Below, one piece after another: positions 28,296 to 36,153 of a stretch of DNA of 64,000 nucleotides. Numbering within the stretch: the first letter of the stretch is position 1; each line of letters begins with the position of its first letter. The notes under the pieces are model-generated. The model was not told the origin of the DNA, did no database searches, and saw only the letters and a list, made by a program, of their open reading frames with translations. The position numbers and the translations under genes were made by a program. Source of the DNA: Pelomyxa schiedti (taxonomy: Eukaryota > Protista > Evosea); contig JAHLWZ010000253.1 in the NCBI GenBank assembly GCA_020536535.1, positions 101,154 to 165,153 of the forward strand, in the 5' to 3' direction.

Positions 28296-28412
28296 GTTTA
28301 CAAAACAAAAGAGTTGTTCGCGAAGAGTACAGATAGAAAAAGGAAATATTGTTTGCTCTTATACTTCAAATTGTGACAAGTGGGAATGAAAACTGGTTTT
28401 GTGACTTGTAAC

Positions 28413-31400
28413 TCAAGCAAGCCTGGTGCGAACTTCCTGTGCAGTCTGGGACCACTCCCTATAAAAAAGAGGTTAGGAATTGCGAGGTGGAGCGGGAGGG
28501 CAAAGGCAACAGACCTTGGTAAAAGACCGACGGCGATGGCAAGGTCAACAACTCTAAGGGCTCTGATGAGGACTGGTTTGTCAACCATTTTCGGGCGGCC
28601 CTTCTTGCCAATTATTTTGACAACACCGGAGGTTGGGTTCTTGAGGAATGCTGTGAGTGCGGAGGTGGCTTCATCAATATCCGGTTTTTCCGGGTTGAAG
28701 CAACGATTGACAACGGGAATCTAGAAGACCGGTTAAAATATAAGAAAAAATTTAAAACGCCTCGTACTTGGTTGGGGTGAATGCACCGCTTTCCAAACAT
28801 GCCCATCTTTTTGGCACGGGCAATAGCTTTTTCAATTCCCTCGTTATCATCGAGAGTGCTATACACCACATCAATCATCGGTACGCCTGCAGGAAGTTAG
28901 ACAAGTGAGTACTTGAGCTCTAACTCACCAGCTGTGCAAGCGGCGTTGCTGACTCGGTGAAGTGCCCACTGGGACTCTTCGTCAGATTCGGTGCGCTCTA
29001 CTCCACGGTCAGCAGTATAGTCTTCCAGACCCATTGATACACCAATGATATTTGGTGAAGCACGGCAGATTTCGAAGGCGCTACAGCCAAATTAGCATCA
29101 CTCTTAAAGTTGATTGCATACTTCTCAACTCCCAGGGCACTCTCAATCAAACAAACGAGAAGAATCGGGCTTGTTTCAACATGAAGAACTTCACAGATTT
29201 TCTGTTCAAGCCTGACGATTTCCTCTCTCGTTTCGACCTTGGGAACAACCAAAACATCAACTGAAGAATGTGGAAGAACAGCCTCCAAATCAGCCCACCC
29301 AAGTTCGTTCTAGTAAGAAATTAGAGTGAAGGCAATTCAGAGGAGTGGCATACAACGCCATTGATCCTAATCATTTTCTCCACATTGCCAAAGTCTACAG
29401 AGTTTCTTAAGGCGTGCCTAACTACAACTCTGGCGAAATCTTTTTGGGCAGGGTCGACAGCATCCTCAAGATCCAGAATAACACCGTCTGCACCACTCGC
29501 GCCACCCTTGCCAACCATGTAGGCATCGGCTCCGGGAATATACAGGTGAGACCTGCGCATGGGCCTGTTGCGTTGGGGTGCTGGGTACACCCGTTTCTCT
29601 CCAACGTTGAACGCCTTTGAGAGAGGAACGTTGAATGTCCGTCGTATCTGTGTCTCCAGTGAAGCAGCAAGGACAAAGTCACGAGCGTAGTCGTATTTTA
29701 TGGTAAGGTGGACATTGTTAATTGCGTAGAAGGCAAGAATGTCAAGAGCCATTTGTTTAGCTTGGGCTGGAGTCACATAAGGAGTGTTATCAAGGCAGAC
29801 TACTTCAACTGAAGTTTCTGGTTGATCTGTTTGGGAGCAGGGGAGTTGGAAACTGTGTATATTAGAAGAGGTCTACTTTGCTTGATTTCAATTTTTGCGC
29901 TGTTAATTCCCATTCCCTTTCTGTCCAATGGTTGTCTGACGATATCAAGAACAGTACCATCTCTCCATTCGAGTACACCAATGATTCTATCTATGAGAGA
30001 AGATTAAAAAAAATTGTTTCCTAATTAGAGGCAGCAAACCCATTGTCATTGGGAGTGTGTGCATGCGGCCAGCTTTCTCAATGCCCCTCTCTCTGAGGTA
30101 CTGTATCGATACAAGTTTAAACCCAAGCTGTTCCTCTGTCTTGCCCTCGAGCTTGGCCAGAAGATCCTTGCGTCTGGGGTTAATAGCAACTCCTTCTTCA
30201 GTAACAATTGCACCGATGCATTCACCCTTAAAAAGAGTCATATTAATGGAGTTGAGAGGTTTGAAATACCGGAGTGGTGATTGTTGTTACGTGATCAACA
30301 ATGCCGGGGTTGCATCTTCTGGCAACAGGCATTGTAATTATTGTGAGTTTTGCACCAGCGGCAGTGTCTTGATGGCCACCGGTGTTGTGCTGGAAACTGC
30401 CATCAGAGTGGGTGTTGACGTTGCCTTCAAATGTCATTAGTGGAAAACAATGAGAATGGCTTACAGTTGAACTCCACATCAACTTCAGTTCCTCCAGCAA
30501 CCATAACGTCAAGCTGATTACAGACATTCCCGCAGTTGTGGGGGTTAGCATATCTGAAGAATGTGAGATGGCTAGAGGTTTGGAATCCATTATTACTGGT
30601 CAATGTCTGTCTCCACGTGCTTAGGGTAGTCTTCTACCATGGACCTCACAGCTGTAAGATCGAAGGCTTGGCAAGTTGTTAGCTTTCTCACAAGTCCCTG
30701 AGTAACAGTGAATGATATTTTCTCTTATATGTCACACACCTTTTTGAGCATGTCCACAAGAATGCAGGTGGTGCCGCCATTAGCCATTTTCGCACTGATT
30801 TTCTTTTGTGCCAATTTAGCAGACAGAGCAGTCATTGCTGTCAGAGATGTGCCACCTGATCCAGCCTAAAGAAAATCAATAATTTCAAATTGCTAACGAA
30901 AAAGGATACTTGGAAAATAAGATCGGGAGTAAGAAGACCAAGTGCATCCATCAAACGAGCACAAGATTCACCAATGGAAAGTACTGCAAAGTGTCATTTC
31001 ATGTCTCTTTCTTTTGTGTGGGTAGGTACCTTGAGGGTCAGTACTGAGCCTTGTTGTTCCGCCCACGATTTTCTTGTTGTCTCCAATTGATTTCACACAA
31101 ACTACATAGTCTACATAGTTTTCACTGATGCTTATTGGAGTGCAGGGGTACTCCACAAGGTTGTCGGTAACAACAACGACGTACTTGGCCAATTTGGCAT
31201 CAATTGCAGAATAAGCAAGAGGGCCGCAGGCACTGAGTCCGTTCACACCATTGCAATTTCCTTACACAGGTCAGAAAAGTTAGCTCAAAGTGACTATGTA
31301 CCCTGGGTGTCAGAAGCAGAGGCAGCAATGAAAGCAATATCAATTTTAATATCTCCTTCTTTTATGGCTCTGACACGGGCACCATGGGACCTAACCACCA

Positions 31401-32071
31401 TCATGCCTTTCAGGTCACCAGCAGAGACGGACCTTCAGAAGGTGACTAATAAATTCTAAAGGTATGAGAATACAATCCAAGAGAGTCGTTGGCTCCGGTT
31501 TGAATGTTCGTGACAGTGCCATCCTTGAACATTTCGATGAGCTCCTTTTGCCCGTCGTGCAGGGATGAAGGAGCAAGGTTAATGTTACGGAAACCCATCT
31601 TGCGCATTTCTTTCATTACAGGAACCAGAACACCATCACCTCCTCTGGAAAGAAGAGGTTAGGTGGATAAGCGAGAAAGGAGAGGAAAAACCTGAGGTGG
31701 TGGTGGAAAGAGACCGTGATGCCATCTGCAGCACCACATGCCTTAAGAGCAGCCACAATGTCTGGAAGCATCTTGTCAGTGCGGGGTAGCCTATTGAGTG
31801 GCCTGAAGGGGACAGAAGCCGTCACTACCACAAGTTAAAACAGAAATACCGAAACAGTAAAAAAAAAAGGGGCCATACAAGAAGGAGTTGTTGCAAAAGC
31901 GCCCCTGAATGGCTTGGTGGGTCCATAGCCAGGGATGACCTTTGGTATTTTTCTCCCGGCAGCATTGATCCAGTAGTCACCCATATCAACCACCTCCCTA
32001 ACATCGTCGGGGGTGGATGTGGTTGTTGCTGTTGTCGCAGTTGTCGTTGATTCGGGTGCCCCGCTTGCCAT
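28413..32071 (-). CDS. citF-citD-citE: Single-chain citrate lyase fusion: CitF (alpha, CoA/ACP transferase) - CitD-like ACP - CitE (beta, citryl-CoA lyase)
   Basis: CitF: NAAGRKIP..PFRGAF, TVSFHHHLRGGD, RSHGARVRAI, SACGPLAY, FQAGSGG, GGHQDTAAGAKLTII, VTEEGVAINPRRKDL, EWRDGTVLDIVRQ. ACP: LDILAFYAINNVHLTIKYDYARDFVLAASLETQIRR. CitE: RRSHLYIPG, DGVILDLEDAV, VVPKVE, LIESALGV, GLEDY, GKRCIHPNQ, KMVDKPV. Confidence 0.9.
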
Positions 32072-32511: not shown

Positions 32512-35193
32512 TCAGAAGCGGAAGTTTTCGGCATTCATAGCCCAGGAGAATTTCTCTCTAAGACTGGAGAAAACCCTTTCAATGGGCAGTCCAACTTTTT
32601 TGCACCAAGAAACAGAAATGCGAGGGTCCAGGTAATTGAGTTTTGACGTGCCCAGTGCATAGGTTTCTGTGTTTCCCTGGGAAAAAAGGTGGTCCATGGA
32701 TTCATATTAATAACGTAATACCTGGGAAGATATGACCCCTTCGATTTGTGCCACTTTTTGTTCAATTGTTACAAGCCGTTTCTTACTGTTGTGAGAGACA
32801 CCATGGTAGTCTTGGTTCGTACCGCACATAGTCCAGTACTATCGGGGATAGTAACTGCTGGATCGGTCTCCCCCTTCCCTGGGGAGACTTCTACATCCAT
32901 GCCATCTTCTGTTGGTTTTCCATTTAGTTTCCAAAGCTGTTTGAGTATCATTTTTTTCTCGTGGTTAAGTGCGAGCAACTATAGATTGACATCAGATTTA
33001 AATGTGATGTCAATTTTAACCTCTGCTTCAAATCTCTTCTTACTTGCAGAAAAAGCAATCTCATTCACTGGGTTCATGTGGCCACACAGAACAGCTACTT
33101 GTTTAATGCAATTGTTGTAAAATTGCAATTTTATTTCTAGTGACGCTTCAGCAGGAGGTGGATCATTATTAAGTTCTTGTTCAAGAGTGAACGATGCGTT
33201 ATAGGTTCGAAACACCTACTATAGTGGAAGTTGTGGGAATTTGAATGACTAGTAACCTTAGCAGATAAGCCTTCCATAAAGGATTGAATATAGTGATTTA
33301 GTAGAGTAGTACTAAGAGCAGAAAACAAGCTTTCTGAGGGGGCCTTCCCCGTAGTGAACTCTTTTAAGTTATTGAAAACAGGTTCACAGACCTGTACTTC
33401 ATAAGTTGACAATATTAAAAATCCTTTCCTGCACCTGAATAGTGTTTTGGTAATGCATTGAGTCTTTTGCAAGAAAATCAAATGAAACAGAACAAGGTTC
33501 GGGTGAATTAGACAACTTGATGTGTTCAACACACAGAGTGCAACACCCGATAGTACCTGCGTCTGCTTCTACCTTCTCATTCCCAACACAAAGTGCCTAT
33601 GAGATGTAAATACAGATATAACAATAGAGCAGAATACTAGTCTATCAATAAAATAGAGAGCTGTTGATCGTTGTTTTTCTAAGGGGTCAGAAGAAATAAA
33701 ACCTCTTGAATAGGCTTCACGAATTTGATCGATTGAAAGCTGTCAAGATGATTAAAGTAATCAACCAATCACAGGTATCTTGCCGCCAATTTTCTGGCTT
33801 TCTCATATTTCTCCATTACAGAAGCCCCTTGGAGACTAAAACTGGGGTGTAACCAAATATACTTGAAAACCCCATTCACTTTTTCTCGCCAAAAGGCTAA
33901 CCACGCCACCTCATTATTATGAACAACCTGGTTCCAGTTATGTCCCTCAATAGGGCATGGCGGAATATCTTCACCTTGTACTGTTCAACTTCTGGAAAAA
34001 AAATTGACATAGAACCTCGTCCAATGTTGATCGTCACATCCTCAGGCATCACTCTTTCCTAAAAGAATACTGAGAAGCAGGTGAGGGAATATCCATCGCA
34101 CCTTGATATGACCAGCAAGAGGGTGCTGCCCACGCCCTAGGAATAATCCTGGTGGTTCTATAGTGAAATTTGCAATGCGTTCTTTTTTCCCATCCACAGT
34201 GGCCCACCCATATTTCTCTCTGAGTTGCTCCTTCTGTACTTTCTCTTTCTATGACCCAAATTAACAGGGAAATTGTGGTGGTGACATACATTTATTTCCT
34301 CTTGTGTGCGCAGTTTTCTAACTTGGGACTGTTGATTCAGGTAGGCATGTATTTTTGTAAAGTCACACAAAGAAAAATCGGTGATGATTGTGGCAGCAGG
34401 GTCATGAAATTCCTGGGGATGTGATCAGATAAATTACCGAGGGTCAGAAAGGGAGCCTTCAGTTTGAGTTTAAAGTCGTGGAAGAAATTCTGCTGGAATC
34501 TCTCCTGCTTCACATGATCAGAATCTAAGTACCTGGCATACCATGTGGCAATCTCTTCAGCTTTGGGTGTCAAGGTGATTGGAGTTCCTTATGCTTACAT
34601 AAGCGGTAACTGTAACAAAGAGCTAGAAACCATTATAATAAAGTTCTTGTCTATGTGGAACATAATCTGGAGGGAAAAGAGGACCATTATGTGATAAAGT
34701 TTCCCATTTATGACCACCTTTTGGCCTTTCATCTTCCTTTTAAGTATTGAGGGAAAAATCAGAAGACCAAACTTACTGATGAAAAGTCCTGCTCGCTGGC
34801 ATCCCTCTTTGTTGGCGGAATAGCTGGGATGAAAGAGGCACTCTTTAGTACTTCTTTGTTAGTTAACTTGGGCTCAGGACAGTCTTTCTTTGTAGAAACG
34901 GTTTTTCTGGTTGATTTCCATACAGCCACAGGTCTCTAGAATTACTATTATTTCATACTGTTTTCAATGCAGGTAAGAAAAAAAGTACATTACAAGAAGT
35001 TTTGGGCACTGACAATTTCCACATGGGGCCTTCATAAGGTGAGGTTGAAGAAAGAGAGAGAAAAAGACAAACGTCTTGATGGCATGAACTCAGAAGTGTT
35101 GAAAACAGGTTGCCCAGATATGAATGTTGTGGGCATCGGGTCAGAAACTTCAGTGGTTGTGACCACTGACGGGAGTAATGCTCCGTGTGTCAT
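32512..35193 (-). CDS. TOP1: DNA topoisomerase IB (divergent; catalytic Arg position is Cys); start uncertain
   Basis: [68 protein letters not shown]. Confidence 0.92.
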
Positions 35194-35520: not shown

Positions 35521-36153
35521 ATGGCTTTATTGCGCCGCGGATCGCAAGGCCCGCTCGTTGCACAGCTTCAGAGTGCACTCGGTGTCCCAGGAGACGGAGT
35601 ATTTGGCCCAGCAACAGAAGCGGCTGTCAAACAGTTCCAAGCCAACAACGGGCTGGCTGATGATGGCATAGCAGGACCACTGACCCTTGGTGCCCTGGGA
35701 ATCGGGGGTGGTGGTTATGCCAGAATGTATGTACAGAATCAGGGGGGATGCTCAGGGCACTGGACTGGGAAGCCTGTGGGAACTTGTTACACAGGGAGTG
35801 GCTGCTGGGCATGTGCAAAGGGCTGTGCTATTCTCTGTGTTTTGGCTCTTGAGGGCTTGGTGGGTATTTGCTTTTTTTTTTTCTTTGGTACTGCAGACAA
35901 CTATAAATTTGCTTTCCAATAGGAGCCAAATAGGGATAATATCACAACACGTTTGAATGGAAATGCTGATGTTGTGTGGGCTGGGTTCACACAAGGCCCC
36001 ACTGGTGGGCACTTTCCAGCCATTGTTAAACTGGCCTCACGACAGCACTATGTAATTGTCACAGGACAAACCAACAGTGGGTACCAGATCTGGGATCCTA
36101 GTGGTGGCAGCACCTATGTAACAACTGACTTGTCTTTGACAGACCACCATTAA
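35521..36153 (+). CDS. Peptidoglycan-binding domain + C39-like cysteine peptidase (putative lysin); 3' end uncertain
   Basis: LRRGSQGPLVAQLQSAL..DGVFGPATEAAVKQFQANNGLADDGIAGPLT (PG_binding_1); YVQ..GCAI..QHYVIVTG..YQIWDP (C39-like Q/C/H/D). Confidence 0.8.

Follow-up and report, generated by a model that had tools for sequence, protein, structure and literature searches.

A spliced gene of Pelomyxa schiedti for a single-chain and apparently cofactor-free relative of citrate lyase

Can a citrate lyase be carried on one eukaryotic polypeptide and dispense with its prosthetic group? The question is raised by a minus-strand gene at positions 28413-32071 of the window, the 64,000-nt stretch of contig JAHLWZ010000253.1 of the oxygen-avoiding amoeba Pelomyxa schiedti in which all coordinates below are counted. 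Classical ATP-independent citrate lyase relies on an acyl-carrier protein (ACP) that is matured by three accessory enzymes. The bacterial enzyme, CitDEF (EC 4.1.3.6), is encoded in citCDEFXG operons, as in Escherichia coli, Klebsiella and Enterococcus, and ATP-independent citrate lyase has been stated to be prokaryote-only (PMC3832036). An earlier note, made from the sequence alone, read the gene as a whole bacterial citrate lyase in the order CitF-CitD-CitE (F-D-E), collapsed from an operon. The gene is real, expressed and spliced. As far as sequence comparison can tell, its product belongs, as a single-chain form, to a class of cofactor-free, citrate-lyase-like enzymes that is apparently undescribed.

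One spliced gene with three citrate lyase parts

The gene model, drawn from the open frame, RNA joints and domain profiles, comprises 18 exons and 17 introns. An exon-by-exon check of the coordinates gives 17 GT-AG introns of 40-56 nt each between 32071 and 28413, and 2889 coding nt, equal to 962 amino acids and a stop, with no stop inside any exon or junction codon. Intron 12 (29827-29876, minus strand) is a GT-AG intron of 50 nt whose removal preserves the frame into the CitD-derived and CitE parts, as the earlier note had proposed. Runs X1, X2 and X3 each have RNA contigs that lack it; if retained, it would lead to a stop codon at 29802-29800, where that note had placed one near 29800. One RNA contig of 2068 nt covers 28563 to ~31138, and thereby CitF, the middle domain and CitE, and at least 15 of the 17 splice joints, among those listed, agree with the gene model. 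The RNA evidence consists of assembled contigs, and the four runs come from one sample of one study, so that they give technical rather than independent support; the genome probably comes from that sample. The protein encoded by the gene was absent from the matches of the protein database searches.

The protein was analysed exon by exon, and its Mastigella orthologue, P0168, served as the stand-in for folding. The CitF-like domain (citrate CoA/ACP-transferase, alpha subunit; exons 1-12, 29929-31984) is matched by the Pfam CitF profile, PF04223, on exons 2, 3, 5, 10 and 11, and by positions 156-489 of TIGR01584 (citF), colinear on exons 5, 10, 11 and 12; P0168, at 512 bits, clears the citF equivalog cut-off of 501. 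There follow a CitD-derived domain, labelled D* for its lack of the prosthetic-group serine (29633-29928; NCBIfam, alignment, hhalign and orthologue fold), a linker within exon 13 (29561-29632; frame, alignment and orthologue fold), and a CitE-like TIM-barrel C-C lyase with its lid (exons 13-17, 28517-29560; PF03328, TIGR01588 and alignment to E. coli CitE), all on the minus strand. The CitF/CitD junction falls in exon 12 (~29929), and intron 12 thus lies within D*, past its first beta-strand, while the CitD/CitE junction lies within exon 13. The NCBIfam citF and citE matches are colinear along the exons; the exons before intron 12 match CitF, and those after it match the HpcH_HpaI profile (PF03328). 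In the exon-wise alignment to E. coli CitE the catalytic residues are all kept, namely Arg (29368-29366), the Mg-binding Glu (29144-29142), Asp (29022-29020) and the lid Asp (28582-28580), whose catalytic and Mg-binding roles have been described (PMC3832036). The whole of P0168 is modelled as three confident domains (pLDDT 94.8, pTM 0.88). The ATP-citrate lyase domains PF16114 and PF00285 match other contigs of the genome, and none at this gene.

It could still be supposed that two adjacent genes, or a misread splice, were taken for one, and that there is no fusion protein: the RNA contigs represent one sample, and F and D*E are separate proteins in Anaeramoeba. Against this, the intron is spliced in three runs, both domain junctions lie inside exons, the fusion is present without introns in other eukaryotic contigs, and it is complete in the transcriptomes of five other genera. 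We give this explanation almost no chance, and the single polypeptide of the earlier note stands.

The serine-less domain and its bacterial relatives

The middle domain is, by the profile and fold comparisons made here, derived from CitD. The top two of 18,950 NCBIfam models for its exon-13 piece are both CitD, at E values of 0.015 and 0.16 that are weak on their own, and a profile of 59 homologous domains matches E. coli CitD with 98.9% probability in hhalign. CitD has been expected to resemble the malonate decarboxylase ACP, MdcC (PMC5534430). MdcC is the best solved match of the P0168 middle domain (model pLDDT 90), over 75 residues at a root-mean-square deviation of 2.2 and a Z of 7.1, which is middling and inside the range of common arrangements; the best Atlas matches are CitD clusters (TM 0.67-0.75). 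Foldseek with D* against the PDB gave no match at E <= 0.001, and PF06857 gave none in the P. schiedti genome, the domain being too diverged. The CitD origin that the earlier note had assigned to this segment is borne out.

The Ser14 position of CitD, which we take to be the attachment site of the prosthetic group (phosphoribosyl-dephospho-CoA), is an Ile codon in the window gene (29905-29907, minus strand; alignment and hhalign against E. coli CitD). The serine is conserved in an alignment of three canonical CitD proteins. In the clade of the window protein D* is further eroded, with Asp16, the DxGA motif and a conserved Arg replaced. No candidates for citC, citG or citX were found in the P. 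schiedti genome, by an intron-blind search of an incomplete assembly that also missed the D* domains. The citrate lyase first described as whole is thus so in its CitF, CitD-like and CitE parts, and not in its attachment serine or maturation genes.

The best matches of exon 13 are bacterial proteins of ~400 residues in which an ACP-like domain is fused to CitE. Of 57 such D*-E proteins encoded in GTDB genomes, 55 have Lys at the Ser14 position, 2 have Arg and none has Ser, and citF lies directly downstream of the D*-E gene in 46. CitF was found in all of 50 D*-E genomes, and CitC, CitG and CitX in one each, although these 50 came from one query, span several phyla with many close relatives and are not 50 independent cases. 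The sole genome with citC, citG and citX has all three grouped about a second citF, on a different contig. The bearers of the cassette include Krumholzibacteriota, KSB1, Calditrichota, Riflebacteria, Cloacimonadota, Ignavibacteriota and others. Because the bacterial D*-E proteins are already fused and serine-free, the D-E fusion and the loss of the cofactor site go back to bacteria, and the joining of CitF to D*E looks like the only eukaryotic step. The collapsed operon of the earlier note gives way to a two-gene cassette, citD*E + citF. The cassette and the window gene have the D-E fusion, the loss of Ser14 and the lack of maturation genes in common; in bacteria, however, CitF is a separate gene, and the D* motifs are more eroded in the window clade.

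The D* fold is retained everywhere, the window D* has a Ser two residues past the Ser14 position, and many bacterial D* domains have one directly after it, so that a classical ACP-dependent citrate lyase could be imagined in which an unrecognised enzyme places the prosthetic group on another serine. But most orthologues have Asn or His in place of the window Ser, the bacterial position varies (Ser in 32, Gly in 21, Asn in 3, Ala in 1), with Gly standing there in E. coli CitD, and citG, citX and citC are lacking in the serine-less class. Such an enzyme is very improbable. The window protein has homologous alpha, beta and gamma parts to those of bacterial CitDEF and intact CitE catalytic residues, and the same two half-reactions would be expected of it. 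It is nonetheless classed apart from CitDEF, because it is one eukaryotic, spliced F-D-E chain rather than separate subunits, lacks Ser14, and is without CitG, CitX and CitC here. With the serine-less D*E + F class it shares a CitD-like domain N-terminal to CitE, the absence of Ser14, the presence of CitF, and no citC, citG or citX.

Other arrangements were seen. A bacterial E-F fusion, P0183, was considered as a precursor and rejected, having a different domain order and a separate canonical ACP with Ser14; P0191, P0192 and P0198 also place E before F, and may be read-through artefacts. One bacterial cit locus (L117:3306-7512) carries a citrate transporter, a canonical ACP and a CitE-CitF fusion, with no citC, citG or citX within that stretch. 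A D-E fusion apparently with the serine, P0127, branches beside canonical CitE and is possibly an intermediate or an independent fusion.

Proposed chemistry and the alternatives to it

The reading that we favour, with moderate confidence, is a citrate lyase that cycles free acetyl-CoA, with a CoA-transferase and a citryl-CoA lyase in one chain. The CitF part would move CoA from free acetyl-CoA onto citrate, giving citryl-CoA and acetate, and the CitE part, with Mg2+, would cleave citryl-CoA to oxaloacetate and acetyl-CoA, the latter re-entering the cycle. The net result would be acetate and oxaloacetate from citrate without ATP, with free acetyl-CoA as the catalytic carrier replacing the ACP-bound dephospho-CoA arm. 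D* would serve as a structural docking piece, and maturation by CitG, CitX and CitC would be unneeded. Free acetyl-CoA in place of acetyl-ACP is the simplest model because neither an attachment site nor maturation enzymes were found, and free CoA is very probably the carrier. CoA thioesters serve isolated CitF and CitE as substrates in vitro (EC 2.8.3.10, EC 4.1.3.34). The stand-alone CitE-like enzymes (human CLYBL, M. tuberculosis CitE, malyl-CoA lyases) have the same barrel and catalytic residues and act on free CoA thioesters, but on other substrates and with no CitF or CitD partner. ATP-citrate lyase (EC 2.3.3.8) also has a free citryl-CoA intermediate; its folds, though, are unrelated, it consumes ATP and it makes net acetyl-CoA.

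Citrate is the likely substrate, favoured because of tricarboxylate-type neighbours and fusions, together with the lack of methylaspartate ammonia-lyase. A bacterial operon in error-prone long-read assemblies (L111:6438-14036 and L112) joins PrpD/MmgE, aconitase, an isocitrate-dehydrogenase-like protein fused to D*E, and citF, and is a candidate pathway from 2-oxoglutarate to acetate. In Stygiella incarcerata (P0177) a LeuD/HacB-type aconitase small-subunit domain is followed by D*, CitE and CitF, in that order, and a DASS/CitMHS transporter adjoins one bacterial cassette. Clustering of the neighbours of 83 bacterial loci found no pathway gene common beyond single clades. Methylaspartate ammonia-lyase had one true match in the 50 D*E genomes and none in the P. 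schiedti genome, which argues against a citramalate lyase (EC 4.1.3.22) of the methylaspartate pathway. The citrate-type lyase of the earlier note remains the best guess.

We infer that the polypeptide is probably cytosolic, works in the direction of cleavage, and acts downstream of isocitrate dehydrogenase and aconitase, so that 2-oxoglutarate would be converted to citrate, and citrate to acetate and oxaloacetate. The P. schiedti genome has five aconitase-family and five isocitrate-dehydrogenase-family loci, and for this organism a cytosolic route from 2-oxoglutarate to citrate by reductive carboxylation has been proposed (10.1101/2021.05.20.444135). True ATP-citrate lyase is encoded separately in the genome, and the present enzyme would be an ATP-free, acetate-yielding route beside it.

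Several observations weigh against this reading. The CitE part of P0168 lies far under the citE equivalog cut-off (TIGR01588; 189 vs 443 bits, the window gene itself being scored exon-wise), and bacterial D*E is likewise under it (238 bits). The window clade has fixed changes at conserved CitF positions (H104Q, G126D/N, G148A, L369A and L390F in E. coli numbering) and a long stem, 0.82 in the CitF tree and 0.63 in the D*E tree, which together could mean a changed substrate. For the dehydrogenases fused to D*E the highest-scoring models are those of homoisocitrate dehydrogenase, with scores under the cut-off, and no assayed enzyme of the serine-less class was found in the literature searched. 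The middling fold score, the relatedness of the 50 genomes and the limits of the search for maturation genes count on the same side.

These substitutions and the long stem would be accounted for by the same two-step free-CoA chemistry on another hydroxy acid (2-methylcitrate, homocitrate, citramalate or similar), in which case a second Pelomyxa copy, the C814 paralog, may keep citrate. Such a change would also suit the upkeep of two ~45%-identical paralogs in both Pelomyxa and Mastigella, the PrpD and homoisocitrate-dehydrogenase-like neighbours, and the promiscuity of the CitE family (PMC3832036). The CitF part of the orthologue is nevertheless still above the citF cut-off, and there is no methylaspartate ammonia-lyase to supply citramalate; we hold another acid to be unlikely, though by no means far-fetched.

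The cycle might instead be open, with CoA taken from another donor such as succinyl-CoA, so that citrate would yield acetyl-CoA in net terms with no ATP spent, or the enzyme would run in reverse as a route to citrate. The loss of the tether would permit exchange with the cellular acyl-CoA pool, 27 of the 50 D*E genomes gave no citrate-synthase-family match (Re-citrate synthase was not searched there), and the CitF part is weakly similar to succinyl-CoA:acetate transferases (E ~1e-4). This similarity, however, reflects a shared fold only, P. schiedti encodes a true ATP-citrate lyase for the supply of acetyl-CoA, and at the concentrations found in cells the balance lies with cleavage to acetate. 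An open cycle is rather improbable, and the closed cycle on free acetyl-CoA and citrate is retained.

Protist homologues, ancestry and meaning

The fusion is not peculiar to this genome. A homologue search that included Archamoebae and metamonads found it in at least six protist genera, with full F-D*-E proteins in Mastigella (2), Mastigamoeba (m51a1_g9471), Paratrimastix (KAJ4455428), Barthelona (2, among them KAL0232413), Kipferlia (GIQ82804) and a second Pelomyxa locus (KAH3756870), and in ~10 environmental sequences. The protist homologues have the same architecture, are ~45-70% identical to the window gene exon by exon, and are named by automatic annotation only. Two of the F-D*-E sequences were traced, both to eukaryote-like contigs. 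An F-D*-E gene without introns, flanked by eIF5B-like and CLU genes, lies on gut-metagenome contigs of 57% GC (L018:6001-8859, also L019 and L020); it groups with Archamoebae, and the contigs look like protist DNA. A further sequence, an intron-containing orthologue of ~62-77% identity on a 75-kb metagenome contig of 40% GC (L021:4086-7389), is probably from another pelobiont.

The second Pelomyxa copy (G000:C814, ~108900-112700; L012) encodes 1077 amino acids in the order F-D*-E with ~19 introns. About 6 of the 17 window intron positions are common to it (within one residue, 1-2 being expected by chance; matched on position, phase unchecked). The duplication is older than the split of Pelomyxa and Mastigella, because both Pelomyxa copies have Mastigella counterparts. 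The NCBI name of the second copy, ATP-citrate lyase, is wrong. The idea that the Pelomyxa paper had confused the F-D*-E enzyme with ATP-citrate lyase was rejected, as its Pelo_5333 is a true subunit of the latter.

In quick trees of the two halves, with exon 13 alone standing for the window gene in the D*E tree, the eukaryotes fall in one clade each (support 100 and 98) with a few bacterial or unassigned sequences inside. The F-D*-E proteins group at support 82 and 93, and window exon 13 stands among Archamoebae sequences at 99. Monophyly of eukaryotic CitF has a support of 25, which neither establishes nor rejects it. Bacterial sequences (P0185, P0188) share the 100%-supported clade of the eukaryotic CitF parts, so that a donor cannot be singled out; the separate phylogenies suggested by the earlier note thus yield one clade each and no donor. 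The eukaryotic D*E parts nest among bacterial D*E proteins. A bacterial origin and a gain of introns, as the earlier note had them, are upheld. The best explanation is that the gene is old in Archamoebae and descends from the two-gene bacterial cassette. The Paratrimastix sequence P0166 lies within or beside Archamoebae clade A in the trees of both halves, apart from Kipferlia and Barthelona, and is possibly, on this placement, a eukaryote-to-eukaryote transfer.

The start codon of the window gene is at 32071 or 31984. An N-terminal extension of 29 residues (31985-32071, minus strand), Thr/Ala-rich and acidic, precedes the second ATG at 31984 and, judged by eye, is unlike a mitochondrial targeting peptide; orthologue matches begin near 31993, and RNA cover fades in the bin 31899-32035. 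The 3' untranslated region is 28343-28412 (minus strand), with RNA contigs ending at 28343-28355. The nuclear context of the gene is confirmed by a eukaryotic topoisomerase IB gene (32512-34600) that adjoins it upstream on the same strand, ending ~440 nt before the ATG. An open reading frame on the plus strand at 35521-35922 has a peptidoglycan-binding domain (PF01471) and is perhaps a bacteria-derived lytic protein.

The earlier note knew of no such triple fusion in a eukaryote, and no paper describing the fusion or the serine-less class was found in the literature searched, most subscription papers being outside the search; the main text of papers on Mastigamoeba, Preaxostyla, BaSk and the mitochondrion-related organelles of Archamoebae mentions no such citrate lyase. 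A Mastigamoeba database annotation does read 'putative citrate lyase subunit alpha and beta', and to that extent the fusion had been recorded.

The gene is less unique than first supposed, and its mechanism is more interesting. It indicates a version of citrate lyase without the ACP maturation machinery, in bacteria and eukaryotes. Tentatively, and with low confidence, a maturation-free class working on free CoA may be spread over several uncultured bacterial phyla and unrelated anaerobic protists, where exchange with the acyl-CoA pool would make an ATP-independent link from 2-oxoglutarate or citrate to acetate or acetyl-CoA, the window clade being tuned to another acid or CoA donor than its paralog. 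The enzyme would fill a gap in the metabolic maps drawn for Archamoebae, metamonads and a jakobid, and add a further case to the enzymes of patchy distribution among unrelated anaerobic protists. As a single-chain, cofactor-free enzyme it would be easy to express, and may offer a route to the first alpha/beta/gamma structure and a test of what the acyl-carrier domain does.

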